Origin: Macrostomum lignano
Taxonomy: Eukaryota
DNA length: 33,829 nucleotides
Direction of reading: 5' to 3'
Assembly (NCBI GenBank): GCA_002269645.1
Contig: NIVC01004834.1
Span: forward strand, 1-33,829
Shown here: positions 282-29,671 of the stretch, in pieces
Layout: every line of letters begins with the position of its first letter
How positions within the stretch are numbered: the stretch's first letter is position 1
Notes under the pieces: generated by a model
Database searches by the model: none
Told to the model about the DNA's origin: nothing
What the model saw: the letters and a program-made list of their open reading frames with translations, nothing else
Position numbers and translations under genes: made by a program

Positions 282-3200
282 CTGAAATAATGAAGTAATG
301 CCTCAACTTCAAGATACACATAATAAACGAAATGAGACACCTGCTTCAGAATTTGGACACATTCAGGCTCGATAGACGAACTAATCTTTTAAGCCTGTGA
401 GGCACCTTTGGATTCAGCCTTAAGACACCCTCCACCTCAGCCTTAAGACACCCTCCACCTCAGCCTTGAGACACCCTCCACCTTAGCCTTGAGACACCCT
501 CCACCTCAGCCTTGAGACACCCTCCACCTCAGCCTTAAGACACCCTCCACCTCAGCCTTGAGACACCCTCCACCTCAGCCTTAAGACACCCTCCACCTCA
601 GCCTTGAGACACCCTCCACCTTAGCCTTGAGACACCCTCCACCTCAGCCTTGAGACACCCTCCACCTCAGCCTTGAGACACCTCCACCTCAGCCTTAAGA
701 CACCCTCCACCTCAGCCTTAAGACACCCTCCACCTCAGCCTTAAGACACCCTCCACCTCAGCCTTGAGACACCCTCCACCTTAGCCTTGAGACACCCTCA
801 ACCTCAGTCTGGAGACACCCTCCACCTCAGCCTTGAGACACCCTCCACCTTAGCCTTGAGACACCCTCCACCTCAGCCTTAAGACACCCTCCACCTCAGC
901 CTTGAGACACCCTCCACCTTAGCCTTGAGACACCCTCCACCTTAGCCTTGAGACACCCTCCACCTCAGTCTGGAGACACCCTCCACCTCAGCCTTGAGAC
1001 ACCCTCCACCTCAGCCTTGAGACACCCTCCACCTCAGCCTTGAGACACCCTCCACCTCAGTCTGGAGACACCCTCCACCTCAGCCTTGAGACACCTCCAC
1101 CTCAGCCTTGAGACACCCTCCACCTCAGCCTTGAGACGCCCTCCACCTCAGCCTTGAGACACCCTCCACCTCAGCCTTGAGACACCCTCCACCTCAACCT
1201 TGAGACACCCTCCACCTCAGTCTGGAGACACCCTCCACCTCAGCCTTGAGACACCCTCCACCTCAGCCTTGAGACACCCTCCACCTCAGCCTTGAGACAC
1301 CCTCCACCTCAGCCTTGAGACGCCTCTTCTTTAGCCATCGAGCACCCTCGGCCCTTCGTCTTATCAAGAGACACGACCCATCACCCAGATACCAAGCAGA
1401 ACACCCGCCGCAACCTACCCATGCTGATGCTCTTAGTCGGATATCCGCCAGACGCGATGTTCTGATCCTCAGCAGATGAAGATTTCTCCCTGCTCACCCG
1501 GCAGACTTGCACCACTTTGCGCACATACAGACACAGCAGCACTGCCCCGGCGGCTACCAGGTTAGCAACGAAGATGGCCGGATCGCGCCACTTATAGCCG
1601 GTGAGGGTGGACACGCAGCCCCAGCACAGCTGAGCCCCTGCGCAGAACAGCAGGCCGAGGGCCACCTGACGCGAGTCGGTCAAATCGGCGTCCCAGCTGA
1701 GCAGCGAGTACACCACGGCAGCCACCAGCAGGCCGGCCGGGTACAGGCAGCTGAGCGCCAGGCCTTCGTCGTAGAAACTCGACGGGCTGCAACGGCTCCA
1801 GGCGACGCCTTCGTAGGCGACCAGCTCGACGCTGTCCGGCCGCTGCAGGATCAGCCACTCGGTGCCGAGCATGGCCGACACCAGGCAGATGCAGATGGAC
1901 AGTCCCAGCAGGCTGACCGGGTGGCTCAGGCCGGTGAAGGATGGACCTTCGCCTGGGGAGCCGGCCGCCCTGTAGATGGTCCAGTTCACCACGCTGCGCA
2001 CCAGCAGGCTGGCGTAGACGATGCAGTAGACCAGGGAGAGGCCGAACCGCCGGATGGTGCACACCACCGGGGTGGCGTGGGCGATGAACGCGATGTTGAT
2101 GGCGAAGATGAGCAGGATGCCGACTAGGCACGCGAAGCCGAGATAGTTGGTGCCGGCCGTGCCCTGCACTTTGCGGGGAAACGCGTAGGCCAAGAAGCCG
2201 ATGGCGACCAGGGTCACAAGGGCGCCAAGGGTGGTCAGCGCCAGCAGCACGGCGCCCCACGGGGTTCGAGCCCGGTCCCACACGTCCGGCTTGGGCAGCA
2301 GGGCCAGTGGGTCGCCTGAGTCGCCCGGACAGCCGCAGTCAACGCCGGTCGGACAGGCGGACGACGGAGTGGCAGCCAGCTGGCTGCCATCGGGACCGTA
2401 GGTGGCCAGGCTGAAGAGTGCGATGAGGGCGCCGATATGTAGTGATGCTGATAGTGTGTCTCAATAGGCTGATAATGTGTCTCAATAGGCTGATAGTGTG
2501 TCTTAATATGCTGATAGTGTGTCTCAATAGGCTGATAATGTGTCTCAATATGCTGATAGTGTGTCTCAATAGGCTGATAATGTGTCTCAATAGGCTGATA
2601 GTGTGTCTTAATATGCTGATAGTGTGTCTCAATATGCTGATAGTGTGTCTCAATATGCTGATAATGTGTCTCAATATGCTGATAGTGTGTCTCAATATGC
2701 TGATAGTGTGTCTCAATATGCTGATAATGTGTCTCAATATGCTGATAGTGTGTCTCAATATGCTGATAATGTGTCTCAATATGCTGATAGTGTGTCTCAA
2801 TATGCTGATAATGTATAATGGCAGGGGGTGTTTGCTGGGGACGGGAAATTCCGATTCGAGTTAAACCAGTTAGCCAATCAGAGTCTAGATAAAGGGAGTG
2901 AGGTGGGTGAATGTACAGGGTAGGGAGGGGCATAATGTGGAAGTGACGGAATTCTAAAAATAGAATCGTACTCACCTCTGGCCAGCTTGAGGCACGTATC
3001 TATTGCGCCAATAGCCAATTTTATTATAGACATATCCGGAGCCCGACCGGACAAAATTGAGCACATCGTAGCCCCGATCTCCGTAGCCATCTGTAGTGAA
3101 CCGGAACAGCAGGCTGTCGTTGCCTAGCCGGCCCTGCAGCACCCGCCACTGCGCGTTGCTAATATAGCGGTAGATAGTTGCCAGGCGAGTGGCCGCCGGC

Positions 3201-3853
3201 ATCCGGTACAGGCACACATCCGTTGCCGTGGTGCCGCATTCGGCCCGCTGGAAATCGGCGACACCTTTGGCGGCGATGAATGCGGACAGGATGGTGGAGT
3301 AGGTGCCGCCGTTCTGGGTCAGCGCGCCCGCTGGCAGGCTGCCGCTCGGGTCGCAGACGGTGGCGTACTGAGTCTGGATCACCGAGCTGCCCGTGAGACG
3401 GCACTTCAGCGTGTGCTGCCAGAATTCCTGTGGTGAGCGAGAGAGTTCAGTGTGGGCGTTAGGGTTAGGATTCTCCAAGATTGACAGAGCTCATTAATAT
3501 ATACTCATGGCGATTGAGGAGAAAAAATTGCCATTTAATACTAGTTGGGATTTTGGCTCTCAATGAGCTCTGCCTCTCCCCTATCAGCCTCTCTTTTTCC
3601 TCCCTCCCTCTCCCTCTCTCCCTCTCCCCTATCTACTTCTCTCTTTCTCTCTCCCCTCTCTCTCTCCCGTCAGCCAATTAGAATCAAGATTGATGGAGTG
3701 AGGTGGGTGAATGTACAGGGCAGGGAGGAGCATGGCAGGGAGAGGCATAGCCCCTCTCTTCCTCTCTCCCTCTCTCCTCTCTTCCTCTCTCCTTCTCTCT
3801 CATCATTTTCTTCTGTATAACCCTACACCTATCCCCTGTAAGTTCTCACTTCT

Positions 3854-3944
<91 letters not shown>

Positions 3945-6900
3945 TCTGGTAGAGACCCCACACGCTTGAAACCGGATGCCTTTAAAAAATTCAATCAACT
4001 TTGACACATCGTGACCTCCTCCCTCACCTCCAGCCAGTCCACCGGGATGCCCTTCCGTCTGGCCGGCGCCAGTCCGATCTCGGCCACCCAGCGGTCCAGA
4101 TCGGGTACAGTGAAGTAGGTCTGGCGCAGGGTCACGGCTCCCAGTGCCGCCGACTCCAGTCCCTGCACCACGGACATCTTGTCCGCCCAGCTGTCCAAGC
4201 CGAGCAGCACAAATCGGCCCTGCAGGCCGAGTTCGCGCACCGCGGTCAGCAGGGTGCGCAGGTCCTGCTCGGGCAGGTAGGCGATCAGCGCGTTGACGTA
4301 CGCCATCCGGCTTGCCGACTGCAGCGCCGCTTTGGCCTCGGCCAGGCTGATCGCCGATCCGGCAGCGCCGGCGCCGATGTACTTCATGCAGACCGACTGG
4401 CTGCCGTTGCGACGGGCGATCGCCGCTTCGAAGGCCGCCTTGCCGGCCAAGCCGAACGGGGTGGTATCGTGGATGAGGGACACCACCGACCAGTTGTAGC
4501 TGCTGGCCACGTCTAGGAGGGCGTCGATCTGGCGGTTGGCATTGGGGATGTGGGTGAGCAAGTGGTTGAATGTGGGTGAGCAGGTGGTTGGATGTGGGTG
4601 AGCAGGTTGTTGGATGTGAGTGAGCTGGTTGTTAATGTGGGTAAGCAGGTGGTTGGATGTGGGTGAGCAGGTGGTAGATTTTGAGACAGAGGTTAATGAA
4701 AGTGCTTATGTAGACTACTTTATCGCTAATCTCGACTACTTCTAGTATAAGAATACGAATATTATGACCCGAAAAAATCGCTCCTTACCTGCACACTATC
4801 CGGCGGCACCACCCGCAGGAATCTCGGGTAAAATGCTCGACTGCTCAATGAAATCGCGGTGGCATCCGGCGACACCACGGTGGAGTCTGGCACGACGGTT
4901 GCCAGTCTGGCGCTGACCGCCGAACCGTCGGTGAGGTAAGCGACGGCGGTCAGCGGGCCGACAAGGTCGGTGAAGCCGGCGTAGCCGCAGATGCCGGTGC
5001 CGGACGTGTAGGAGAAGGCGAAGGTGGCCGCCCGAGCCTCCGACTGGCAGACATCGATGCTGAGGCCGCCGAATTTGAAGCCGGAGACGTCGGGGTCGCT
5101 GTTGTTGTTGATGAGGTCGATGGCGTAGTGGAAGGCCAGGAGGTTGTTGAAGCCGGACTGCAGGTTCATGAGGCCGCACAGGGATGCGGACCGGCTGCCG
5201 TGGACTGACAGGAACTGCACGAGGTTCAGGTCCATGCTGCTGGAGTTCACCTGCATGTACACGGAGCTGGCGGCGGGGTGAGGGTTGGTCTGAATAAGAT
5301 GGGCGTGATTCAGATAGCGGTAGATATCCAGATTGACATCTGATGGCATAAGGTGTCTGCCGGTTTTTCAAGATGTCAGTTTGGCGGTGTATGATATCAG
5401 TGGGGGTGTATGATGTCAGTGGGGGTGTATGATGTCAGTGGGTGGTGTATGATGTCAGTGGGTGGTGTAAGATGTCAGTGGGTGGTGTATGATATCAGTG
5501 GGTGGTGTATGATGTCAGTGGGGGTGTATGATGTCAGTGGGTGGTGTATGATGTCAGTGGGTGGTGTATGATGTCAGTTGGTGATGTAGGATGTCAGTGG
5601 GTGGTGTATGATGTCAGTGGGTGGTGTATGATGTCAGTGGGGGTGTATGATGTCAGTTGGTGATGTAGGATGTCAGTGGGTGGTGTATGATGTCAGTGGG
5701 TGGTGTATGATGTCAGTGGGGGTGTATGATGTCAGTGGGTGGTGTATGATGTCAGTGGGTGGTGTATGATATCAGTGGGGGGTGTATGATGTCAGTTGGT
5801 GATGTAGGATGTCAGTGGGTGGTGTATGATGTCAGTGGGTGGTGTATGATGTCAGTGGGGGTGTATGATGTCAGTGGGTGGTGTATGATGTCAGTGGGTG
5901 GTGTATGATGTCAGTTGGTGATGTAGGATGTCAGTGGGTGGTGTATGATGTCAGTGGGTGGTGTATGATGTCAGTGGGGGTGTATGATGTCAGTGGGGGT
6001 GTATGATGTCAGTGGGGGTGTATGATGTCAGTGGGGGTGTATGATGTCAGTGGGGGTGTATGATGTCAGTGGGTGGTGTATGATGTCAGTGGGTGGTGTA
6101 TGATGTCAGTGGGTGGTGTATGATATCAGTGGGTGGTGTATGATGTCAGTGGGGGTGTATGATGTCAGTGGGTGGTGTATGATGTCAGTGGGTGGTGTAT
6201 GATGTCAGTTGGTGATGTAGGATGTCAGTGGGTGGTGTATGATGTCAGTGGGTGGTGTATGATGTCAGTGGGGGTGTATGATGTCAGTTGGTGATGTAGG
6301 ATGTCAGTGGGTGGTGTATGATGTCAGTGGGTGGTGTATGATGTCAGTGGGTGGTGTATGATGTCAGTGGGTGGTGTATGATGTCAGTGGGTGGTGTATG
6401 ATATCAGTGGGGGGTGTATGATGTCAGTTGGTGATGTAGGATGTCAGTGGGTGGTGTATGATGTCAGTGGGTGGTGTATGATGTCAGTGGGGGTGTATGA
6501 TGTCAGTGGGTGGTGTATGATGTCAGTGGGTGGTGTATGATGTCAGTTGGTGATGTAGGATGTCAGTGGGTGGTGTATGATGTCAGTGGGTGGTGTATGA
6601 TGTCAGTGGGGGTGTATGATGTCAGTGGGGGTGTATGATGTCAGTGGGGGTGTATGATGTCAGTGGGGGTGTATGATGTCAGTGGGGGTGTATGATGTCA
6701 GTGGGTGGTGTATGATGTCAGTGGGGGTGTATGATGTCAGTGGGGGTGTATGATGTCATTAGGAGTTGTATGATGTCAGAGAGTGATGTAGGATGTCAGT
6801 GGGTGTTGTAGGATGACAATGAGTCGTGTATGCTATCAGTGGTGATGTAGGATGTCAGTGGGTGGTTTATGATGTCAGTGGGTGGTGTATGATGTCAGTG

Positions 6901-9900
6901 GGTGGTGTATGATGTCAGTGGGTGGTGTATGATGTCAGTGGGTGGTCTATCCACATTCTAATAAATTCCCCATAGCAACCAATTAGACGGGAGCACTCAC
7001 AGGTTGCGCCCCAGATTCGGGCAGACGGTGTCGCAGGAGCCGGCCAGGCTGCAGTTGCTGGTCCAGGCCAGGCTGAAGTCGCTGCGCAGTTTTAGCAGTG
7101 CCGTATCGTTGTAGGCGCCGACGCTGGAATAGAAGAAGTTGGTCGTTGAGCCCGATGATGTGGTGCGCAGCTCGTAGATGTGGTAGCCCCGGTTGCTGTC
7201 GCCGGCCGCGTTGACGGAGAAGTTCAAATTGGTGGCGTCGACGAACACGGCCGACCGGATGCCGCTCTGCACCCACTGGCGCTTCTCGCCGGAGCCGTAG
7301 AAGTCGCTGCAGATGCCGTTGTAGTCCGGACCGCAGATGCGCAGCAGAGCCGTGTGGATGCCCAGCGCGGTGGAGTAGACAGCGTTCACAACATAGAGGG
7401 CCAGTGAGTCCTGCAGGTGTCCACGGCGGGGCGGGGATTCTTTTATTTCTTTTATTCGCAATTCCTTTCAATCAAAAAAGTTTACAGCTCTTTCAAAATG
7501 GCATCAGTTTCTTTCAATTTGTTTTCGGTAAATAAAAAATTTGAAAATGAGCCGACAATTGGATGTTGTCGACATCATACACAGTTTAACGTGTTAAAGA
7601 TCAGACACAGAACTCCAAATTCTCCTAAGCTTTTGAAGACAAGATCATAAACTGTATGTTTTAAAAACTTTCTCTAGGACTGCCGTCTAGATTAATGAGC
7701 TGCAGTTCCAAGAAATCTGTTAATTCAATCGCTCTTTAGACTTTGAGGGAGGAGGAAGATGACGTGATGGGAGGGCTGTCACTGACTATTAAACTTCAAC
7801 TCACCTTGTGCCCTGCTTAACGCGCCAAACGTGCATCTCACTTATGCATACATCATGTACTTTCTACCCAAACTTTTACCAATCGCTCAAATATCGTTTT
7901 ATACCATTTAGTATTTAAATACTTGTACGAGTATCTCTCTAAAACAAGTCTAAACGGTGTCGCGTCACCTTTTTCGAACAAACGTTCAATTGCAGATCCA
8001 GGAGAGGGTCACAAAAAGGTCAGCTGACCCCCTTGCCGGGAAAAATCCTAGATCAGCCCCTACAAACTTTGAAAGATTAATCGAATGAAACTTTGGGTTA
8101 GATATCAATATATGACACTAGAATGACAGAATGGGTCGTTGTGTTGAGCAGGGCTGAACACCTGCATGAAAGAGGCCCTAGTTACAAGATTTTTACAGCA
8201 TCTCATGTGCTCTTATGAAGCTGCCTTGGTTCTAGCGCTCACCTGTGAATAGTTTGCAGAATCCGTGAGCGACATTGTAGACGAGCTGCATCTTTTACTG
8301 TAGTAGGGCGAACTGCTGGACAGGGTGCACTGAAACAGGTGCTCATAGTACTCATTGAACCAGGGATTCACCGAAGCGTAACTTGTTGGATTCTTTGACA
8401 GCAGGTAGCTTCGCTCGAAGTCAGTGAGGTCGGCGGTCTCGAAGCCGAACGTGATGGCTCGAGGATAGCGGCCGTTGGTGATTTTGCTCAGCACAGTCTT
8501 GCTGTTGCCCCAGTAGGTCGTGCCTGGTTTGCGAGTGAGGTGGGGTTGGTAATGTTGGAGAGCTGGTGTAAGCTGGAGACTGAGATGAGCGACTGGGAGA
8601 TGCTGCAGGCAATGTTTTTTTCTAGTGTATCTCCTTTGCAGACCAACACTAATCCTGTTGCTTCCGGCACTACTAACTTCTTCCAGTACTATCGGTGCTT
8701 CCTGTACTACCAGGTGCTTCCGGCACTACTAACTTCTTCCAGTACTATCGGTGCTTCCTGTACTACCAGGTGCTTCCGGCACTACTAACTTCTTCCAGTA
8801 CTATCGGTGCTTCCTGTACTACCAGGTGCTTCCGGCACTACTAACTTCTTCCAGTACTATCGGTGCTTCCGCTAACTACAGTTATTCCCTGTACTTGCAA
8901 GTTTTACAACCACTTATTTTCGGCTAGTTTTACTTGCTTGAACTACTTGTAATAATGTTCTACTGTCTGTCTGACTGTCTCAATTCTTCTCACCCTGGCC
9001 TCAACTAGGCAAGCACCTGAATGACCTTGTTGTCAACGAATTTCGCTTACCAATAAACAGGAACCGATCGTATGTAAGATTATTTCGCGACACGGCGCCG
9101 AGAAGTTCAGCGAGGTCGTTAGACTGCAGGAAGGTGACAATCACAGTTGACTGGGGCCTCTTCAGCAGCTCGGAGGCCACTTGATCGGCGTTAACAGCGG
9201 TAAGACCGGTGCGGTTCACCTGTGAGAGTCAATGGCAGGGCCCAGTTGAAACTGGTATTTAGATTTAATTGGCTTTTTCCTTGCTTGTACAGTTCTGAGA
9301 TTTAAACATTTAGTATATGGACTAGCATTCAATGACCCCCCTGTGGGGGCACCTTTTAAGCTCCCCGAGCTACATATGCACGTACAGTATACATGTACGA
9401 GACACCCCGTGTCATCTTGATCCCATCTCTGTTTGAGCAGAAAATCTACCTGTAGAGTGTGACTGATGCAGATGCCTTCGTTAGCGATGGCTCGCTGAAC
9501 AGACTGCAATCCGCTAGATCCGTAGGCGCCGGGAGACAGCACGAATTGTACATTGGTGAGGCCGTAGCGCTTCAGGAAATCCACAATAGCGTAGGCCACC
9601 TTGTCGTCGCTGGGCACCGTGCGCGAGAAATACGGATAGAGCTGCTTGTTGCTAAGGGAGCTCATGGTGGCCGCGTAGGAGATCACGGGCACCTGCACCA
9701 CGTTGGTTACCTGTAAAGGTGGGCAGGGGCGAGTTGAGTTGGTAAAGAAACCACGTCGTAAAACTTTTGTACCAACGTAGCCGGATGACCTATGCTCGAT
9801 TCCTGGAGACTACTCATATGAGTGATTCCTGTGGCTGGCCTGTGAGAGCATCGAGTCTCGAAATAAAATTGAAGGATTCACTTGATTACCTAATATACCG

Positions 9901-12900
9901 GTACATATGAACACCGTTAAGGAGTCCCTAGTTCCTAGAAGCATAAAGTAGCTAGTGAATTTAGTATATGGACAAGTAATCTACGACCCCCCTGGGAGGC
10001 AATTAACAAAAGTCCAAAAATTGCTTAACTCGATACTCATACTTTCGGGCAATAGCCCGAAAAATCACACCCATACTACTCCAGGTACTTAGCATTTATC
10101 AGCTAAACACCAATGGGCTGTCGGTTTAACAATTCCCCTATCACCGCCAAGCGTGGGATGAACAGGTAATTAACTAAGTAAAAACCCACCCTAGACAGTT
10201 GATCTGCCATCTCGGATGTGGAGGCAGCCACGTAAGCCATGACATTTTCTGGGTCAATTCGGTTCAAGCTGGAGTCCCTGAGCACGATGGAGCCCGAGTG
10301 CAGATTGGCCACCAGGCTGTCCGTGCGCACAGCTGACGAGCAGGTGTCCATGACAATGCCGCCAACCTTAACGCCGCGAAGTTTTCCAGAGAATATCGGA
10401 CTGGTTTGGATGGATTCAATGGCGTATTTGAACACCTCCGTCAGGAGGAAGCCGTTCTGGCCGTTGACTCTGCCGCAGCTGAACGGCACAGAGCCGGAAT
10501 AGTGCACATCGAAGAGGCCTGCGGGTGAGGAGTGAAAGTATATCTTCTCTCTAACTTTATTTTTTCTTCATCCTCTCTCAAATAAGTCCTTTTTGTTCAT
10601 CGATTTCTTAGCCTACTGGGCGCCCACCTCACTCCGTTTCTATTTATTTTGCCCCCATTGGCTGTCAGCAGCTTTCCTGCCCCACTGGGCACCCACCTCA
10701 CTCCATTTCTATTCACTTCACCCCATTGGCTGTCAGCGGGTTTCCTACGCCACTGGGCGCCCACCTCACTACATTTCTATCACCTCGCACATTCATTATT
10801 ACGAGTAGAATTTAGACAAATGCTTTCGCTAGCTAAATTTCTCACCACCAATCAGCAGCTGGCCGGGCACATAGAGAAACTTCTCCGTCCTATCCAGCGA
10901 TTTCGGACAGTTGGTGCAATCGGCACAGGCGGCTGGCACTGAGCTGTACACGGAGCTGCGGCTGGGGAACGCGGGCAGATCGCTGAGCACGCTGAACATG
11001 TACCTGCCTACTGGAAGGTAGTCCGGGCCCACCCGGTTTAGCGCCAGCCAGCCCATGTTGCCATCGCGATTGGAACGGAATTCAAAACTGCTGCCGCCGA
11101 GAGCTAGGAATTTGACAGCAGACAGCCTGTCTGCCAGCTGTCCGTTCAGTCCGGGGTTCAACCAGAAGTTCGGGCAGACGGCTAGGTGGGTTGCAGTGCG
11201 AGTGCAAGTGTAGCCAATTCATCGTAATTGTTGCTTTGCGCTGATCATTTTGAAACTTCGGAATTCAAACACCCCACCTCCCTGACTGATTCTCCATTTA
11301 AACACCCACCTCCCTGACTGATTCTCCATTTAAACAGTCCCACCTCACTGACTGATTCTCCATTTAAACAGTCCCACCTCACTGACTGATTCTCCATTTA
11401 AACAGTCCCACCTCACTGACTGATTCTCCATTTAAACAGTCCCACCTCACTGACTGATTCTCCATTTAAACAGTCCCACCTCACTGACTGATTCTCCATT
11501 TAAACAGTCCCACCTCACTGACTGATTCTCCATTTAAACAGTCCCACCTCACTGACTGATTCTCCATTTAAACAGTCCCACCTCACTGACTGATTCTCCA
11601 TTTAAACACCACCACCTCACTGACTGATTCTCCATTTAAACACCACCACCTCACTGACTGATTCTCCATTTAAACACCCCACCTCACTGAATGATTCTCC
11701 ATTTAAACACCTGCTACCGGCTCAAACAGTCGTCACAATCGGCCCGTATTCCGTGACTCACAGGTGTAGGAGCTGTTGCAACCAGCGACCAGCATATCCG
11801 CATAAGCTTTGGCAATGCTGAACAGCGCATTGGTGGTTGTCATCATGAACAATCCCGGATAGAACTGCGGCGAGGCAGCCATTGGCCAGCTGTTGTTGCA
11901 GCGGGAGCTGTAAGCCAAACTGCCCGTGGTGCTGCAGTTGAACAGAGCCTCGTAGTAGGGCACCAGCCACGGGTTGTCGATGCTGCTGTCAGCCGACAGG
12001 CCGCTCAGGTGGGCCGTCACTCCGGCAACGTCGGGCGAGTTCACCTGCATCACCCAGCTGTTGTTGGCGCCCGGCCCCAGGCCGCTCAGGGCGCTGTCGC
12101 GCGTCATTTCGCCCCAGTAGTTGCTGGCGATGAACACGAGGCCGTTGTTGTCGGCGGTCAGCTGGACGAGGTCGGCCGATTTGTCCGACAGCACCACCAC
12201 TACTCGGGTCTTGGAGATGTCGACTGTGAAATGAAGCCGGTTGAAATTGAGATTTGAAGTATCGAAATACTAAGAAAAATGTCTGTGTACTGGGGCGCTG
12301 CTATTGTAACATGCAACTCGCTGACAACTCTCACTCTGTCTTCCAACTGCAGCTCAGGGCTGCTGCCAACTAACCGCGACCGACTCTGCTTAACTCTGCT
12401 TCACTCACTCGGCTGGGTACCCTTTTGAAACCATTACTATGCTCGTTAATCGGCGCACTTTAATGCACTTTATTCACATTAACGTGATTCACAAGTCTTA
12501 AATAGAAAATTGATTTTGAGCCAAAAGCTGAGATTTTCACCAACTTGCTTCTCACGCATCAGTCAGTTTATACAAAATTTGAAATTAAATCCTCTGCAGT
12601 ATAACTCACGGATAATGTTCGACAGGATGGAGGCCACCGAACCGTCTGTGCCGACCTCAAGGCAGCGTGGCACGCAGATTCCCTCCCGCAGAGCCTGCAC
12701 TCGGAACTCAGTAGCCAGCCGGTTTCCATAATCATTGTTAGAGTACACCAGCTGGACGCACTTCCAGTTGAACTTGTTGATGACGGCGATGATGGCAGAC
12801 ACCTGCGACAGGCTGGCTGGTACGGTGCGGAAGACGCCCAGGGCCGTCAGGCCGTCGGAGCTGGCCGACGGGCTGACCAGCGGAACGCCGCCGAGGTCAC

Positions 12901-15900
12901 GCAGCACCGGAGCCAGCGCTGTCGTCACGGCGTCGCCGTAGCTGACCCAGCTCCGGATCTTTGACGCGTCGATGTTGGCACCAGTCGACCTGTCGGGTAG
13001 CAGCAGGGTGCCCTGAGAGATGGACGTCACCAGGCTGATGGCCACTGATGAGGAGCCGCAGACATCCAAGATGAGGGCGCCCAGCTTCACGGAGCCGCCG
13101 AAGCGCACGTCTGACTTGTTCCCGCCGTTAATGTAGTCCAGCGTCCACCTAACGGCCTCGGTGTAGCCGAAGCCTTCACCAGTTTTGACCGGGCCGCAGG
13201 CACCGCCGGAGCTGCCAGGAGAACGAACGTTGACCAGAACACCGACAAGGATGTCGCCCGGTAGGTACAGGTAGTTTGGCGTGCCAGTGAAGTACGGCGC
13301 GCACTCGCTGCACCGGGAAGTGTCGCCGCACGAAGAGGAAAGCGTGGCGACGCCGTGAGCGAGCTGCAGCAGGCCGGTGTCGAGGCTGAAGGCGGGCACC
13401 GTGGCTCCCACGGCCTCGTAGGCGGCGCTGCCGTTTTTCACGTTGTACACAGCCAAGCCGAAGGTCGGCACGGAGCGATCAGCAAAGGTAAAAGTCGAAC
13501 CAGTCGATGGGTCGGTGAACCTGCCGTCCCCAAGCTGAGCAATCAGGTCGGCCTGCAGCCCAGTTCCGGTGCCGTTTCCGGCCGGGGAGGCGAACCAGAA
13601 CGCGGTGCAGACGCCGCCGCTGCCGCCTGTGCAGACGCGGCTCAGGCGGGTTGAAGCGGCCAGCGCGTAGCTGGCCGACGCTCGCAGCACAGAGGAGGTG
13701 TAGGCGGACTCAGTGTACCTGGCCGAGGCTGTCAGGCTGTGCGAGGCGGCGCCAGAGCACAGAGTTGTGTAGCCGCGCATGCTGGCAGCGGACAGCGAGC
13801 AGCTGTTCAGGGACTCGTACCACTCCGAGTACCAGGGGTTCGCGGCTGTCTCGTTTGCCAGCTCGCGAGTCCGACCAGCCCAGGTCTGGTAAGGCGTAGC
13901 GGAGGCCGGGCGCGGCTCACCGACTGTGATGACGCCCTGCGATTGGCTGACGCTGGTGGCAGTCAGCGCCGATTGGCTGGAGCCCCAGGCGACACCGCCG
14001 ACCAGCTGGACTGGCGCCGTCACCTGCGGCAGCAGTTGGGCCGCGTCGCTAGCCGTCACCAAGGCGACAACTACGGCTGCCGAGGTGCGCGTTTTCACCT
14101 GGGCCATCACCTGGGCGTGGGTGCCGTTGACGCCGATCACGTAGGTGGCCGAGACGCAGATGCGCCGGGAGCGCGCACCGGCAATGAAGAGGCGCGCAAT
14201 CTCCTGGTTGGCGGCGTCCGGTGAGCAGACCAGCTGGACGTAGTTGACGGACAGAGACGCCAGGGTGGACAGCAGAGCCTCGGCTTCGGCGGACGCGGAG
14301 GCCACAGTCTGGTAGAGATAGGGACTGGAGGTCAGAGCGGCTGGCCTGAAGGAGATCAGCGATCGCCGCTGGGCCGCCAGCAGCTGGGCGATGCCGTCGG
14401 TGCTGCTGGCGCTGCCGGAGCCGACCACGCCGATGATGCGGCTGGGATCGAGGCCGGCGATTCTCCGGGCGCCGCTCAGCAGGGAGTCGACGAGGTCCTG
14501 GCCCAGCACGGAGCTGCCGCAGTCGTCGATTGCCACGGCGCCAATGAGGTCGGTGGCGTTCACCAGGGAGTTGGCCTGGCTCACGGAGTACAGAAAGGCG
14601 TCCAGCTCGCTGCTGCCATCGAGGCTGACGGCGCCGCAGCTGCGCGGACTGGAGCCGGGCGAGTGCACGGAGAACACGCCCAGCAGGTAGAGCTGGCCGG
14701 GCACGTGGGCGAATTTGAAATCCGGCGCGGCGGCCAGGCAGCCGGAGCAGGGCGCCGCAGGGCAGGCAAACTGGGGCAGCGGGATCACGGCGTCCCTGCG
14801 CGATGGTGAGTCGATAATTCTTAGTGTTACTAATAGTAGTGGTGACTTTTCGATTAGCTAGCTGCATTAAAACCTTTGCATCGTTTACGGAGCAGTTGAA
14901 TAGACAGGTACAAGTAGACAGGTGGGTATAGAGGTAGACGACGGGAGGCATGTAGGTAGACACAGTAGATATATTGGTCGACAGGTAGGTAAACTGGTAG
15001 ACAGGTAGGTATATTGGTAGGCATGTAAGTATTACAGGTAGACAGGTAGGTATACTGGTAGACAGGTAGGTACACTGGTAGACAGGTAGGTATATTGGTA
15101 GGCATGTAAGTATTACAGGTAGACAGGTAGGTATACTGGTAGACAGGTAGGTACACTGGTAGACAGGTAGGTATACTGGTAGACAGGTAGGTATACTGGT
15201 AGACAGGTAGGTACACTGGTAGACAGGTAGGTATACTGGTAGACAGGTAGGTATACTGGTAGACAGGTAGGTAATATTGATAGACAAAGTAAGCATAAGG
15301 GTAGTCAGACAGGTATAGACAATTAGACAGTCCATATTCAATCTAAGTAATAAAATATAGCTGCCAGTGCCTGCAACGAATCGCTATGAGCCTCACCTGG
15401 CCGAGTTGTACACATTCACGCTGCCGGACCGCCATTCAGAGAAGGTACCAGCCAGACGAACCCCCACACGGACGTAGGCAAAGGCTGTGCCGTTCTGCCG
15501 CAGGTTGTGCACAAAGTAGTTGGTCTCGTAGGGTTCGCCGGTGTCCGTGAGCCGCAGCTGCTTCACCCGCCGGTCTGGCTCGCTGCTCGCCGTCGAATAT
15601 CTGCCGGGGGAATTCGATTTTCGTAAGACTGGACCGTTTGAGCATCTCAGTGTGAGACTAGACCATTTGAGAATCTCAGTGTGGGACTAGACCATTTGAG
15701 AATCTCACCGTGAGACTAGAATATTTGAGCATATCCCCATTGAGACTAGACCATTTGAGAATCTCACCGTGAGACTAGACCATTTGAGAATCTCATTGTG
15801 AGACTAGACCCTTTGAGCATCTCTCCATTGAGACTAGACCATTTGAGAATCTCATTGTGAGACTAGACCATTTGAGAATCTCATTGTGAGACTTGACCGT

Positions 15901-18900
15901 TTGAGCATCTCACTATGAGACTAAACCATTTGAGCATCTCACCGTGAGACTAGACTAGACCATTTTAGGCATCTCAGTGTGAGACTACATGTAGACCATT
16001 TGAGAATCTCCCCATTGAGATTAGACCATTTGCGAATCTCACTGTGAGACTAGAATATTTGAGCATCTCATCGTGAGACTTACAGTAGACCATTTCAGCA
16101 TCTAACAATGAGACTAGACCACTTGAGCATCTCAATGTGAGACTAGACCGTTTGAGCCTCTCAATGTGAGACGAGACCATTAAAGCTACCTCAGAGAGCC
16201 ATAGAGCCTCTCACCTGGCAATCCGCTCAGCGGCCGTATAGCTAAAATCGGTCGCAGCCACCGCCGCGCTCAGCTCAGCATAGGTGGCGCCGCGCAGAGC
16301 CGCGCAGACCCCGCGAGCCCCGGCGCATTTTGTCTGCCAGAGTGAGCGCAGCGCCCTGGCGTAGGCGAAAGCGGCATCGATGGCCGGCTCGACCAAGCGG
16401 TTCTGTTGGTACTGGGCGGTGGCGGTGGCCATGTTGAAGGCCGGACAGGGGGAGCTCCGGGATTGGCCAGGTTGGTGCCGCCGGACAGGGTGCAGTTGCG
16501 GGTCTGCATGAACCACTGCTGGAAGGCGGCGTTGCCACTACTGGCCACGTTGGACAGCTCGTTCAGGTAAAACGTCTCAAAAGCGTCGTTCGTTCGGTAG
16601 CCGAGACTCACGGAGGTCAGGCCGCGGGCGTTCCTGACGCTGAGCAGGGCGGCCGGATTGCCGAACGAGTCGGACATGATCCACTGGAAGGCGCTGGACG
16701 CCGGTCGTTGAACAGTGGCGCGAAGTCGGCCAATGAAACGACGGCCACCACGGCTCGAACGCCGGAGTCGCGCAGGCGGCCCAGAGCGGACGAGATTTCC
16801 GCTGCGCTTGGCGCAACGCTGATGGCTGACGCCTGGGCTACGCAGATGCCCAGGGAGGCGCTGAGGCTGACCAGGGCAGACTGACCGGCGGTGCCGTACG
16901 CGTCCGTGGTGTACAGGATGCCGATGTGAGTCCAGTTGTACTGCTTGAGCACAGCCCCGATTGCCTGCAAAAGTGTTGGCAGTGGTCTTCGCATGGCAGT
17001 AATAGTTGTGACAAAGGGGGTTGTAGCCTAGTAAGGGGGTTGTGGCCTAGTTAGGGGGTCGTAGCCTAGTGGTTAGAGCGTCAGACTCACGACTTGAAGG
17101 TCGTGGGTTCGATTCCCGATCCAACTGGAACAATTTGTGTCCTTGAGAAAGACAACTAACTCTGCATTGCTTCAGTCCACCCAGCTGTAAAATGGGTGCC
17201 AGCATTAGCTGGGGTAATTGAGGGTGTGTGTGGCGACCCCCCAGTCCTTGGACTGAACAGCCGTACGCAGCCTTCAGATGCGCCGCGCAATAGCTGTGGC
17301 TGAGCTGTCGGTTGCACATGTGCCCAATAGGGCAGGTGTAATCAATTACGCTCGTATTATTATTACAACAATAATTCCAGCCTATAAACTACTGGCACCC
17401 GATGCATCCTGTTGAATTTTAGAATATTGATGAAGTTCAAGCATCGCACCGTGAACTCACATCAAACTGGGCGGTGTCGCTCGGGATGGTTCGGAAGAAG
17501 TTCGGATAGGCCGAGCGGTCGCTCAGGCCGGGCCCGCTGGCCGAGTAGGAGACCAACGGGATGCCGAAGTCGTTGAGCAGCGGCGCGAGCGACACGGCCG
17601 AGTCGGTGGTAGCTGGGCCGATGACGCCGGGCACCAGGGTCTGGTTGGCTGAGCAGGAGGCTGCGGTGGACACCAGCTCGGGGAAGATGGAGTCCAGCAG
17701 TGAGTCCGTCACCTGGCGCCTGCCGCAGGTGTCGTGAACGCTCAGCACTGCGGATGCAGGTGTTCATTTGAGAAATTATTCTCAAAAGCCCATTTTTAAT
17801 GTTTCTCAATCCGCTGACTCAACCTTGCTACTCAAAGCTCATGCACTTTTACAGACCACTGACTCAACCCTGCTACTCAAAGCTCATGCACTTTGAGACG
17901 CCGTGAAGCCACAATTACTCACCGAACTTCACTCCGGGAATGTAGCTGTCATTTATTGCCAAGCCGGCTTCCGTTCCAGAATCCTTATTTAACAGATCGA
18001 ACGCCCATTCCAACGCTTTGATGCTTGGCCAGGCGTCTGTGGAAAGAAATTGCATTTCATTTTAGCTCGTACTTTACATTACATTACATTACATTACATT
18101 TTTCCAGTGGAAAGTCGAATCAAGTAATTAATTTCTTACAGTTTACAGTTCTTACAGAAAGTAAATCTTTATTGGAATAACCAAGCTATTGAACCCATGC
18201 TTTTCATTGTCTATGGTCCAAAGGAGATCTAGGGAGCAAAAAATTCGAAAATTTTAGCGCGCGGTTTCATCAGTTGTGCAACAACTACTTTGGCGCTGGC
18301 GCCAATCCGGTGCTGGCGCCGTATTGGTGCTAGCGCCGCTTTAGTGTTAGCGCCATATTCGTGCTGGCGCCGCTTTAGTGTTAGCGCCGTATTCGTGCTG
18401 GCGCCGCTTTGGTGCTGGCGCCGCTTTGGTGCTGGCGCCGTATTGGTGCTGGCGCTGCTTTAGTGTTAGCGCCGTATTCGTGCTGGCGCCGCTTTGGTGC
18501 TGGCGCCGCTTTGGTGCTGACGCCGTATTGGTGCTGGCGCTGCTTTAGTGTTAGCGCCGTATTCGTGCTGCCGCCGCTTTAGTGTTAGCGCCGTATTCGT
18601 GCTGCCGCCGCTTTAGTGTTAGCGCCGTATTGGTTCTGGCGCCGCTTTGGTGCTGGCGCCGCTTGTGTGCTGGCGCCCCCACGATGGTGTACATGAAAGA
18701 CGCCGTACCCTAATAAAAATCCTGACTAAAGCCCTGACTCACCTTCAACCAGATGCGAGCAGCCGAAACCGTCGGTGCCGGGCCGACGCAGCGCCGCCAG
18801 CACGGGCACCCGAACCGAGGCCGCGCTGCCGCCGCTGCCTAGCGAGAAAGGCGAATAGGCGGCCGATGCGGCGCAGGCCTCAGCCTCCAGAGACGATGCT

Positions 18901-19514: not shown

Positions 19515-25218
<5,704 letters not shown>

Positions 25219-25720: not shown

Positions 25721-28700
25721 CTGAAATGCCGCCCGGGTAGGTAGACAGATTAGAAGGCAATTGGTAGGCAGAAAGGTAGGTACGTAGATAGGTAGGTAGA
25801 GAGATAGACAGATTGATAGGTAGGTGGGTAGGTAGGTAGGTAGGTAGGTAGGTAGGTAGGTAGGTAGGTAGGTAGGTATGTAGGTAGGTAGGTAGGTAGG
25901 TAGGTAGGTAGGTAGGTAGGTAGGTAGGTAGGTAGGTAGGTAGGTAGGAACGTAAGTAAATTGGTAGGTAGGTAGGTAGGAAGTTTTCTAGATATGTAGG
26001 TCAGTAGGTAGGTAGAGAGATTGATAGGTAGTGCGTAGGCAGGTACGTTAGCAGAAGTACTCTATAATAAAGGGTCGAAAAAACAGAAACAAACCCCTGG
26101 ATGGGGGCAGCACATTCCGGCCAAACTGTCCGCTGTAGTTGCCGGGTGGGCGGTACCGGCCAACAACATAGACCCGGCCGGATTTGGACACCGCCCGGCC
26201 GAAACCGACCTCGGTTGAAGATCGCCAGACCAGCTGGGTAAAATGGCCTGCGATGCGGGATCACATCGAGTCAGCGTTGTGCTAGATGGTCCAGCAGTTG
26301 GTGTTCACATCTCTAAACTGTCACATCCTCAAACTGTCACATCCTCAAACTGTCACATCCTCAAACTGTCACATCCTCAAACTGTCACATCCTCAAACTG
26401 TCACATCCTCAAACTGTCACATCCTCAAACTGTCACATCCTCAAACTGTCACATCCTCAAACTGTCACATCCTCAAACTGTCACATCCTCAAACTGTCAC
26501 ATCCTCAAACTGTCACATCCTCAAACTGTCACATCCTCAAACTGTCACATCCTCAAACTGTCACATCCTCAAACTGTCACATCCTCAAACTGTCACATCC
26601 TCAAACTGTCACATCCTCAAACTGTCACATCCTCAAACTGTCACATCCTCAAACTGTCACATCCTCAAACTGTCACATCCTCAAACTGTCACATCCTCAA
26701 ACTGTCACATCCTCAAACTGTCACATCCTCAAACTGTCACATCCTCAAACTGTCACATCCCCAAACTGTCACATCCTCAAACATTTTCATTCCTAAACTC
26801 TTCGGCCATTTGCTCACCGCAGGCCAGCTGATCCTCGCCTGTCCACTTGTACTGATCAATTTCGTGGTACCACAACTCGGAAAACAGATCGCCTTTAAAG
26901 AGAATTGCCGAGCAAGAAGAAGAAGATTAGCATTGCAGGATCCAAGGTGCAAAAATGATATTTTCAAAACGGGAGCATTACCTGGAAAATTAGTGAATCC
27001 TTTTCTAAACTTCATAGCCACATTCTCGCCCAGTCCGAGCGAGCTGCATTTGGGATCGTGCGCCATCTTGTCCTTGCCGGCCAGGACCTCCGCCCAGGCC
27101 TGGGCCAGCCTGGACAGCTCAGGGTTCAGGCGCAGCGGCGGCGACCGGTGCAACGCTCGGAACTCGTTGTGCGACACCAACAGCTGGTTCTCGAATTTCT
27201 TCTGGCTGAAGATCTGAGGGTCGGATGAATTTAGATAGCAAATTTCTGCTTTGGTGTCTATAAAAATCAGTCTACACATATGTTGAGATTATGTGGCAGA
27301 GCAGCGCGGTGGCAACCGCGTCTGACTCTCTCGCTACGAACCCGTGGTTCGATTCCGCGCAACCACATTCATTTGGGGCTTGTGTGTGCACGAAAATTGG
27401 CCCAGGGGGTTTGTCATGTCATTCAAAACCATGAGGGCCAACACCCCAAGGCACAGAGACTGTATATGCCTGACGATTAGAAAGTCAGTGCCGCTGTACA
27501 CCCTGTGTGAGCTGTGTGTGTGAGAGCATGTCTGCCCTCAGGAGTACAGCGGAACGGGCAGAATTGCCTTACCCGGGTTTCACGTAACAGCAACAACAGC
27601 GTTACGGGATGTGCCTTGGGGCCTGGTAGTTACAAGTAAATGTGTACTTTTGAAGGGAGTGGGAATGCAGGTGCAAATTCAGGTGACCCGCAGAGTCAGC
27701 CCGCCATAGGAGGCAATAAGGCCTGTCTGATTTCGTTGACACCTGAGCATGCATACGGATAAGTACGGAGGCACACTCTCGCACAGGATGTAAGAGCTGC
27801 CCTGACTCTTTCATCGTTATTTTAGGCACTAGTTCTGTGTCAGTCTGCTGTTCACATGAATCCGGTGTTCTAAAACTGTATTAAAGCAAAACAACTGAGC
27901 TGAGCTGCTCACTTTCTCATCGGATTTTGTCTCCTCCTTTTTCTCCGGCGCTCGCACGTGGCTCTGCTGCAGTGTCTGGCGAAGCAGCAGCGCCGCCACC
28001 GGACTCGAGGCCGCTTTGCCGCCGCCACCATCGGCGCTGCGCTGCGGCACAAAGTCGGTCAGGTTGCGCATTGCGGCGCTCCCTCCGCCCCCTCCGGCGC
28101 CGGTGCTGAACGTCACCGAGCGACGTTTCGCGGCGCCAAAGTCGCGCATCGCGAACGAAATCGGCGACGGCATCATCATTGGCTCCTTGACGATCTCTTC
28201 GCCGGCTGCTTTCACCACTGGAGAGAGATATTGGGCAGCAGTGACAGGTGCTTTATTCTGTTTAGTTGAACACAAATCTGTTAGCTACTAATTAGTAGTC
28301 TATATTGGACACGAACAGACATGTAAAAGTACATTTATTTATAGAAAAGTTTACAATCGATAATGATACTGGTGCTTGAATCTGTGCAATGGTAGACATG
28401 TGCATTGCATATAGTATATGCAGCACAGATGTCATTACTCCATGCTACTTATTTTACGCTAATGCAAAGATAAGGAGGCCGGCTGGATAGATAATAAAGA
28501 TTGAAAAGCAGTCACGTGATGAAATTTCTAAATTGGGTAAATATTGGGGAGCGGCTGGTGGAATAAGGGTGAAAACTAATTGCTTTTGTGCCTGGGTGGT
28601 TTTGTCTTGGAAAATAGAATTTAGAATAGAATATCGATTGACCATTCTAAATCATATTTTAGGACACTCTACTGAACTTAAGCGACTCGTCTCTCACGTG

Positions 28701-29671
28701 CATCCTTATCTCTCCCAGTCTTCTCTCAGACCGTCTTCCATCACTTATCTAATGTACACTTATTCGCGATCGACTGATTATCAATCAATGTACATTAGAC
28801 CCGCCCACACTCAAGATGGAGTGTAAATCTTTCTAACCCTCCTCGTATCTTATCCATTTTTAATTGATTACGTTGCCCGTCCTGGATTAGCCTTTTTATT
28901 AATAACCAACCCTCCAGCTTGTCAAGTATGAAGTTGCAATGCGGCCAGCATCGCTCACCATCATCAGCGCTTGGTAGAACATTCTTTCTAAATTCTCCTT
29001 TATAGTTGCCAGGCGGTCTGTAGCGGCCTACAACGTACACTCGGCCGGTGTCGGACACGGCCCGGCCGAAACCGACCTCTGTAGTGGACTTCCAGACTAG
29101 CTGGGTGAAATGGCCTGCCAATGATTATCAAATTGATGGGATGGAGAACTCCTTTGTAGATACGCTTAGCAACACTCAGCTGTGGGTTATGCGATTTGTG
29201 CGTCACAAGGCCTAGATTATTGGCCGGTGAGGAGAGAGTGAAGAGATTGAAGCTTGCAGTTAGAATTCTCAGTCCTCATTAACTGGTTTGGGGTTGGAAA
29301 TCTTAACATATTACTGTTTGTTTCTTCTTCTAGAAGCTCAGCAGAAAGCAATAGTTTTGCCTACCGCACTCGGGTTGCATCTCGTTGCTGTTCCAATCGT
29401 ACGAGTCGATCTCTTCGTACCACATGTCCGTGAATACGTCGCCTGGTAGGGTTTTACAGGGCATATGATAGCGTAGTTGCGTTTTAGTTAACAATTGACT
29501 ACTTATAATTAAGTTCGCTGACGTTTTACAGCAATGGCTATATAGAGAATACAGGTCATATATTTAGAGCTGCGAGAGTATAAAACATTTTAAAATGCAG
29601 TTTTTCCCTCAGTCAATGTTTGTCTGAAGCATCAAATTGGCTTCTCAAAGAAGAAAAATTAAAGAGAGAGA

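Follow-up and report, generated by a model that had tools for sequence, protein, structure and literature searches.

The window analysed here is a stretch of 33,829 nucleotides from the flatworm Macrostomum lignano (contig NIVC01004834.1 of assembly GCA_002269645.1, positions 1 to 33,829). Its minus strand carries, between positions 1381 and 18968, a gene of 17 exons for a G protein-coupled receptor (GPCR) of class C with about 2855 amino acids, with five Venus flytrap domains (VFTs) in series ahead of a seven-transmembrane domain (7TM). Each VFT is followed by a stub with three cysteines, at the place where metabotropic glutamate receptors (mGluRs) have a cysteine-rich domain (CRD) with nine. 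The best overall explanation, to which we assign a probability of roughly 0.68, is an ectodomain built of five cassettes of VFT plus stub, in which the stub would be a truncated CRD and its third cysteine would be stapled to lobe 2 of the flytrap that precedes it.

An earlier note on this DNA had read five linkers of exactly three cysteines each from the minus strand, and our translation returns the same peptides, all in frame in one spliced gene. Linker 1, CPAAPCSGC (14738..14764; C539, C544 and C547, spaced C-x4-C-x2-C), comes after VFT1. It is followed by linker 2, [10 protein letters not shown] (13301..13330; C1017, C1023 and C1026), after VFT2, linker 3, CADCTNC (10907..10927; C1496, C1499 and C1502), after VFT3, and linker 4, [11 protein letters not shown] (7021..7053; C1989, C1995 and C1999), after VFT4. 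Finally, linker 5, CPTGVDCGC (2329..2355; C2532, C2538 and C2540, spaced C-x5-C-x-C), comes after VFT5. From first to last cysteine the stubs measure 7-11 residues. Each stands behind a Pfam ANF_receptor unit and at the same place in an alignment of the five modules, so that the linkers do follow the VFTs as had been proposed. Moreover, each linker holds the sole cysteines between the last intradomain disulfide of its VFT and the first cysteine of the next VFT (or the first transmembrane segment, TM1). The last linker had been placed about 20 residues from TM1, and the actual distance is 23 residues, from C2540 to W2564.

A cysteine in lobe 2, also claimed by the earlier note, is present in every VFT within the motifs GICVA, RICVS, GICVP, GICIS and SVCMK, and all five fall on profile state 219. 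On the minus strand these are C250 of VFT1 (LGICVAQ; 16842..16844), C741 of VFT2 (RRICVSA; 14156..14158), C1235 of VFT3 (EGICVPR; 12674..12676), C1713 of VFT4 (EGICISH; 9468..9470) and C2242 of VFT5 (QSVCMKY; 4388..4390). Their homology with C234 of mGlu2 was borne out in a search of PDB sequences, in which phmmer aligned RRICVS and EGICVP, with C741 and C1235, to the mGlu2 segment 'ARNICVATS'.

The five units align over their full length, with cysteines conserved at seven positions and then a terminal cysteine cluster per unit. Six of these positions (profile states 42/87, 339/353 and 393/401, occupied in 5/5 modules) match the three disulfide pairs that mGluR and CaSR flytraps are known to have within the domain, and their pairing is assumed by homology. 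VFT4 contains exactly 7 cysteines, the three canonical pairs and the lobe-2 cysteine, which together with its 3 linker cysteines gives a clean parity for five disulfides. In terms of chance, the ectodomain has five clusters of three cysteines, where 20000 shuffles of it gave 0.89 on average (P = 8e-4), a test that takes no account of the clusters sitting exactly at the module boundaries.

A few other ectodomain cysteines of the window protein have no obvious partner: C32 (18873-18875), C718 (14225-14227), C1207 (12758-12760) and C1239 (12662-12664). The first of them precedes VFT1, and an N-terminal cysteine seems to be conserved in the mollusc orthologues (consensus of alignment A1, described below). 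C718 and C1207 are located in the strand after an 'NW' motif and may be buried thiols.

As for the domains, the protein runs from a signal peptide through five mGluR-type VFTs to a class C 7TM. Pfam ANF_receptor matches were found on the exons of all five successive units. At the C-terminus, Pfam 7tm_3 (PF00003) matches at 2.2e-24, with 86.9 bits against a cut-off of 33.5, over profile positions 4-247 of 251. The 7TM with its short C-terminal tail takes up residues 2564-2855 (1384..2259, minus strand), shows seven hydrophobic segments and keeps the cysteines of TM3 and of the second extracellular loop (ECL2). Its nearest solved structures are mGlu2 and mGlu3 (phmmer, 6e-10), and in sequence searches both VFT and 7TM are nearest to group II/III mGluRs. 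GABA-B gave no match to the window VFT or 7TM at E <= 1e-3. An AlphaFold2 (AF2) model of VFT2 has a core with pLDDT 80-93, and Foldseek places it at TM 0.64-0.71 to the ligand-binding domains of mGlu2/3/5/8. This run, on VFT2 with its linker, used a 12-sequence alignment (A2) built from module-2 subsequences; a previous alignment (A1) of a 517-aa query against full-length orthologues was discarded, with the C-terminal part of the query scattered across modules. By its predicted VFT and 7TM domains, the gene product is a class C (glutamate-family) GPCR.

The family of this receptor was collected with the 728-aa exon 6 in an exhaustive, profile-free search of representative sequences, which returned 799 relatives. 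The best match is the same M. lignano protein, held in UniRef as A0A1I8I1E6 (P0001 in our set). The next-best relatives have 2700-2870 residues, about 28% identity and five VFT modules in the same register, and were found in a nemertean (Tubulanus), gastropods, bivalves and cephalopods; the five window modules are in register with P0002-P0010 and P0157-P0177. Examples of the five-VFT family are XP_074641006.1 and XP_076434694.1. Four modules are found in relatives from a hemichordate, chelicerates, crayfish and insects, and two or three in those of amphioxus. Crinoids have three or five VFT profile matches (Antedon P0079, Anneissia P0015), and the brachiopod Lingula (P0012) has up to six, some of them partial. 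The source annotations of these relatives read 'uncharacterized' or 'mGluR3-like'. Precomputed Pfam domains of 24 mollusc orthologues comprise PF01094 and PF00003 in 23 cases, and PF01094 only in a shorter model (P0178).

Conservation was mapped with a profile made from the five window modules and applied to every module of 181 family proteins. Within 29 five-VFT orthologues from molluscs and the nemertean, the lobe-2 cysteine is accompanied by exactly three linker cysteines in 143 of 144 scorable modules, and the sole exception belongs to an apparently shortened gene model. The check in orthologues that the earlier note had called for thus finds the pattern conserved, which argues that it is not due to chance. 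The wider family provides 269 linkers with three cysteines.

The spacing within the linker is specific to the module. In linker 1 it is C-x4-C-x2-C in all 28 orthologues with three cysteines there, as in the window. Linkers 2 and 3 are mostly C-x3-C-x2-C in the orthologues, and linker 4 is C-x5-C-x(1-2)-C. Linker 5 reads C-x5-C-x-C in 21/28, and the window again matches the family majority. This module-specific spacing, conserved across phyla, supports the proposal that the duplicated unit is VFT plus stub. Since both the pattern and the spacing are shared by the orthologues, these alignments indicate that the five-fold arrangement is older than the split of flatworms, nemerteans and molluscs, with each cassette kept as a unit.

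From the third cysteine to the first cysteine of the next VFT there are 31-36 residues in linkers 1-3, about 20 of which already belong to the VFT. In the window, the corresponding distance after linker 4 (7020-5176) is 66 residues, compared with an orthologue median of 37. This longer stretch may be an insertion peculiar to the lineage, or else the exon 13/14 junction of our model is imperfect.

We then considered the relation of the stub to the CRD. The nine-cysteine domain has indeed been replaced, as the earlier note held, in that no NCD3G domain was found and the stub occupies the position where the CRD starts: NCD3G (PF07562) gave no match on the linkers at E <= 10, nor on the exons in the Pfam scan, and PF07562 is absent from the precomputed domains of the 24 mollusc orthologues. 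For comparison we used the nine-cysteine CRDs that occur in a few matches of the family search, namely a sea anemone protein and fish CaSR-type proteins. The first linker cysteine lies a median of 88 residues after the last VFT cysteine, versus 91 for C1 of the CRD. Stub and CRD have a P-x-S-x-C lead-in in common, with a Ser two residues before the cysteine (180 of 269 stubs, all 13 CRDs), and the commonest stub spacing is C-x3-C, as in C1-x3-C2 of the CRD. On account of position, lead-in, spacing and the covariation given below, the stub is best read as a truncated CRD with probable equivalents of CRD cysteines 1, 2 and 3. A full CRD bonds its C1 and C2 to C4 and C5. Since the stub lacks the latter two, its connectivity must have been rewired, presumably with C1 bonded to C2.

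The direction of change is more likely a reduction from a full CRD, because the nearest relatives are CRD-bearing mGluRs and the combination of ANF and NCD3G is reported to be widespread in animals (PMC12716839). One match from the sea anemone Actinia tenebrosa (P0179, 1867 aa) has two VFTs, each followed by a full nine-cysteine CRD. Either the model fuses two genes or the protein is a receptor with VFT plus full CRD in tandem, and in the latter case it would help, by comparison, to understand how the cassette arose.

The pairing of the third linker cysteine with the lobe-2 cysteine was the main inference of the earlier note. In mGlu2, C518 is the third cysteine of the CRD, and C500 and C504 are the first two. 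A disulfide within one chain joins C518 to C234, which lies at the helix F base (PMC12394075). In the family, the two cysteines vary together. Counting modules with another VFT after them, those with a lobe-2 cysteine have exactly three linker cysteines in 180 of 187 cases. Those that have no lobe-2 cysteine number 12, and three linker cysteines occur in none of them (two cysteines in 7, one in 3 and none in 2; Fisher 9e-15 for the association). The latter modules have no cysteine anywhere near the lobe-2 position.

Furthermore, the 7 linkers with two cysteines allow the missing one to be named. In 7/7 the first cysteine has Ser at -2 like Cys1, and 2-6 residues separate it from the second, as for Cys2; where Cys3 would stand there is a different residue, so by alignment the one missing is Cys3. 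The pair of Cys1 and Cys2 persists in scorpion, horseshoe crab, tick and crayfish modules that lack the lobe-2 cysteine and Cys3, and the fact that chelicerates and a crustacean kept this pair when the other two cysteines were lost is our argument for a bond between Cys1 and Cys2. A metal site, for example for Zn, formed by the three linker cysteines and the lobe-2 cysteine was set aside on the same observation, as the persistence of Cys1 and Cys2 fits a disulfide and not a site of four ligands.

Several points weigh against this explanation, in its pairing or in its account of the stub. Apart from one crinoid module, and possibly another module, those that have no lobe-2 cysteine all belong to a single arthropod orthologue group ('module 3 of 4'); the Fisher value overstates the case, because this amounts to only two or three independent losses. 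The AF2 model, made from 12 sequences, gives the linker a pLDDT of about 42-60, with parts below 50. A few modules with a lobe-2 cysteine have one or two linker cysteines (for example module 1 of P0093), some of which may be gene-model errors. With regard to the CRD, phmmer locally aligned Cys2 of linker 2, and not its Cys1, with C500 of mGlu2, which makes the one-to-one homology of stub and CRD cysteines ambiguous. The change may also have gone in the other direction, with the stub as a precursor of the CRD. Lastly, every disulfide proposed here is a prediction from sequence rather than a bond seen directly. The claim of the earlier note stands in part. Covariation and the parity of VFT4 favour the pairing, and the small number of independent losses and the low-confidence AF2 linker speak against it.

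A candidate module without lobe-2 cysteine but with three linker cysteines, module 4 of P0037, was rejected, since it came from a profile misalignment of 2 residues and GKCIA is present. A profile search with 14 two-VFT proteins gave four matches and no further lobe-2 losses.

The third module of the arthropod four-VFT proteins (P0020, P0026, P0030, P0031, P0078, P0088, P0092, P0129, P0037 and P0119) has lost the lobe-2 cysteine, the third linker cysteine and one member of the second canonical pair. Insects keep one linker cysteine there, and a scorpion paralogue (P0037) and P0119 keep none. In these sequences it looks like a progressively degenerating cassette.

The wiring that we propose is as follows. 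The ectodomain would consist of five tandem cassettes, each a VFT with its three-cysteine stub. The stub would have lost the hairpin between C2 and C3, now shrunk to 1-3 residues, and everything past C3 (cysteines 4-9). Cys1 and Cys2 would close a small local loop, and Cys3 would bond the lobe-2 cysteine of its own preceding flytrap, as the homologue of the C234-C518 bond of mGlu2. Such a staple would pin the chain that leaves a flytrap to lobe 2 of that flytrap. Past the staple, the next flytrap's first strand would be reached after about 12-14 residues, and TM1, in the case of VFT5, after about 23. The flytraps would then be joined via short stapled joints and not via floppy linkers. We regard it as probable that the exit strand of each flytrap is stapled to its own lobe 2 in this way, giving short and stiff joints, including that between VFT5 and the membrane. 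The earlier note went on to suggest that closure of one flytrap is relayed mechanically to the next, which is speculative.

The same cysteines could be wired otherwise. Class C receptors are dimeric, and VFT1 and VFT5 carry cysteines in the inter-protomer loop that make a covalent dimer plausible, so Cys3 might reach lobe 2 of the partner protomer and cross-link the dimer at every joint. Covariation does not distinguish a bond in cis from one in trans. We nevertheless consider the trans bond quite improbable. The homologous bond of mGlu2 lies within one chain (PMC12394075), and the stub stands at a CRD-like distance from its VFT and hence beside its own lobe 2. The dimer-loop cysteines, moreover, are limited to modules 1 and 5 (30/30 each), which suggests that modules 2-4 are not cross-linked.

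A different possibility involves the linker only. Here one disulfide would form inside the linker and the third cysteine would be free or bind metal, the lobe-2 cysteine would be a buried free thiol, and their co-occurrence would reflect ancestry. It gains from there being just two or three independent co-losses, from the AF2 model, which gives no confident docking of the linker on lobe 2, and from the other apparently unpaired cysteines of the window protein (C718, C1207, C1239 and C32). Still, the lobe-2 cysteine and Cys3 hardly vary among more than 280 modules, which represent at least eight phyla, and an odd exposed extracellular cysteine is seldom kept so strictly. Loss of the lobe-2 cysteine always comes with loss of the last linker cysteine, in arthropods and independently in a crinoid, and the homologous residue of mGlu2 is disulfide-bonded (PMC12394075). 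With these observations taken together, the linker-only arrangement is unlikely, and a staple in cis between Cys3 and the lobe-2 cysteine is the arrangement we prefer.

It could also be that the five-VFT protein is an artefact, in which separate single-VFT genes in tandem were wrongly joined and the linkers are protein ends. Some matches of the search are clearly fused models, namely vertebrate-type V2R/CaSR arrays (P0016, P0028 and P0077), and the VFT1 exon of the window has two frame breaks. Our exon model was assembled manually, by reading three frames and joining exons at GT-AG sites whose splice phases agree. From high to low coordinates, exons 1-6 are at 18968-18743, 18036-17923, 17747-17461, 16964-16215, 15600-15397 and 14795-12610, exons 7-12 at 12223-11762, 11181-10846, 10518-10190, 9710-9450, 9219-9051 and 8523-8243, and exons 13-17 at 7410-7001, 5356-4789, 4528-4028, 3427-2976 and 2410-1381, the last including the stop. 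In this model all 16 introns join in phase, and the translation shows no internal signal peptide, transmembrane segment or stop within the spliced five-VFT chain ahead of the 7TM. Linker 1, the whole of VFT2, linker 2 and half of VFT3 share one open exon of 2.2 kb (exon 6). One orthologue is a single uninterrupted open reading frame of 8.5 kb on a contig of 8.8 kb, itself the assembly of a sequencing run, which argues that the chain is not a fused gene model. Finally, more than 30 species have the same order of five modules with the same module-specific features. All this makes an artefact extremely unlikely.

The two apparent 1-bp frame breaks bound a stretch of exon 4, in VFT1, at 16447..16703 (minus strand, from the three-frame reading). 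They lie between 16703 and 16702 and between 16448 and 16447, both in short C/G runs, and touch no linker. A second M. lignano protein (P0151) is intact across the first break, reading [10 protein letters not shown], and A0A1I8I1E6 is intact across the second, reading GAPPCPAFNM. Because intact versions of both sites exist in other M. lignano copies, the breaks were treated as likely homopolymer-length errors of the assembly or copy-specific lesions, for instance in one homeologous copy. For the acceptor of exon 4 we followed the A0A1I8I1E6 model, near-identical to the window translation, and used 16964. An acceptor at 17027 was rejected, as it added 21 odd residues.

Some features differ from flytrap to flytrap. 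A cysteine of the inter-protomer loop is present in VFT1 (C145; 17653-17655) and VFT5 (C2129; 4987-4989). In 30/30 five-VFT proteins it occurs in modules 1 and 5 and not in 2-4. By alignment position, we take this loop to be that of C140 in mGluR1 and C121 in mGlu2. The distribution suggests that covalent bonds join the dimer at the distal and membrane-proximal flytraps only. As for the ligand, the equivalents of T168, Y216 and D295 of mGlu2 (profile states 153, 201 and 275) are mostly kept in module 1 and partly in modules 4 and 5. Modules 2 and 3 have conserved, module-specific replacements at these positions, such as Arg at D295 of module 3 in 18/30. This suggests that different flytraps may bind different ligands.

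The cassette also occurs in proteins that look like something other than GPCRs. Mollusc proteins of about 1100 aa from Haliotis, Solemya and Potamilus (P0050, P0072, P0086, P0103 and P0120) have two VFTs, each with a three-cysteine stub, and a single hydrophobic segment after them; their first VFT has an extra cysteine pair in a beta-hairpin. Pfam finds no 7tm_3 in these proteins. To judge from their sequences, they look like an apparently single-pass, non-GPCR use of the cassette. Because stubs occur in these proteins, the staple would be a feature of the structural module and not specific to 7TM coupling.

A wider reading would have an undescribed family throughout Bilateria (flatworm, nemertean, molluscs, brachiopod, arthropods, echinoderms, hemichordate and amphioxus), with two to five cassettes and a 7TM, in which stapled joints of about a dozen residues mechanically relay closure or reorientation of distal flytraps to the 7TM, several ligands are integrated and the stub is the minimal coupling unit. 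Taken as a whole, this reading is doubtful.

In the surroundings of the receptor gene, repeats are common. Its introns are rich in minisatellites, and nearly every one has an array of 14-34-bp units, for example 80 copies of a 20-mer at 5372-6950. A (CTAA)n microsatellite of 5.6 kb with about 1400 copies (19627-25218) lies between the receptor gene and fragments of at least 2 tandem genes of the CAP/CRISP family (PF00188), found upstream on the minus strand at 26740-27288, 28798-29124, 30139-30537 and 31340-31657. Three of these four fragments match the Pfam CAP model; the one at 31340-31657 gave no match at E <= 0.001 and was judged by eye.

In the open-access full-text papers searched, we found neither class C receptors with several flytraps nor a three-cysteine replacement of the CRD described, and an earlier description elsewhere is possible. 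The only tandem-VFT sensors found there are bacterial (BvgS, EvgS and CdgH). The new element is a class C GPCR with an ectodomain of serial VFT plus mini-CRD units. The family is large and old and covers many phyla, and it raises the question of the role of five different flytraps in one receptor. Macrostomum lignano is a laboratory model that is amenable to transgenesis (PMC5173321).

Bacterial sensor kinases of the BvgS/EvgS type have tandem periplasmic VFTs ahead of a membrane-spanning signalling module (PMC4352136, PMC8174306), and so are a precedent for signalling through stacked flytraps. They differ in having two VFTs of another subclass of periplasmic-binding proteins, no cysteine staples and a histidine-kinase output, and only the general fold class is shared. 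Venus kinase receptors combine a VFT, a single transmembrane segment and a tyrosine kinase, and show an invertebrate use of class C-type VFTs outside the mGluR architecture (PMC4026697). They are similar to those mollusc proteins that combine two VFTs with a single hydrophobic segment and the three-cysteine stub; unlike the window receptor, Venus kinase receptors have one VFT and a kinase output.

Among the GPCRs, GABA-B is like the window gene in its short stalk between VFT and 7TM, which has no nine-cysteine domain, and differs in its single VFT per chain versus five here. GABA-B is not known to have a disulfide from lobe 2 to the stalk. The closest systems are the group II/III mGluRs (mGlu2, mGlu3, mGlu7 and mGlu8), which are like the window gene in the best match of VFT and 7TM, the three VFT disulfides, the lobe-2 cysteine and the cysteines of TM3 and ECL2, and like VFT1 and VFT5 in the inter-protomer-loop cysteine. 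On the other hand, mGluRs have one VFT, compared with five in series in the window protein, whose VFTs keep the amino-acid-binding residues only in part and differently by module. Ahead of TM1, mGluRs have a rigid CRD of about 65 residues and nine cysteines, where the window protein has a stub of three and about 23 residues from the cysteine thought to be stapled. With NCD3G the stub shares the distance from the VFT, the P-x-S-x-C lead-in and the C-x3-C start, and its third cysteine apparently takes over the lobe-2 bond; cysteines 4-9 and the three beta-hairpins are missing, and the Pfam model is blind to it. For class C GPCRs, the bond that joins lobe 2 to the CRD is regarded as the link from ligand binding to the transmembrane domain. 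If the proposed wiring is true, the stub would be a minimal coupling element, useful for understanding and engineering VFT-based receptors and biosensors. Compared with the mGluRs, this receptor has apparently kept one coupling bond and discarded nearly all of the surrounding domain, and its cassette of VFT plus stub is reused up to five times per chain.

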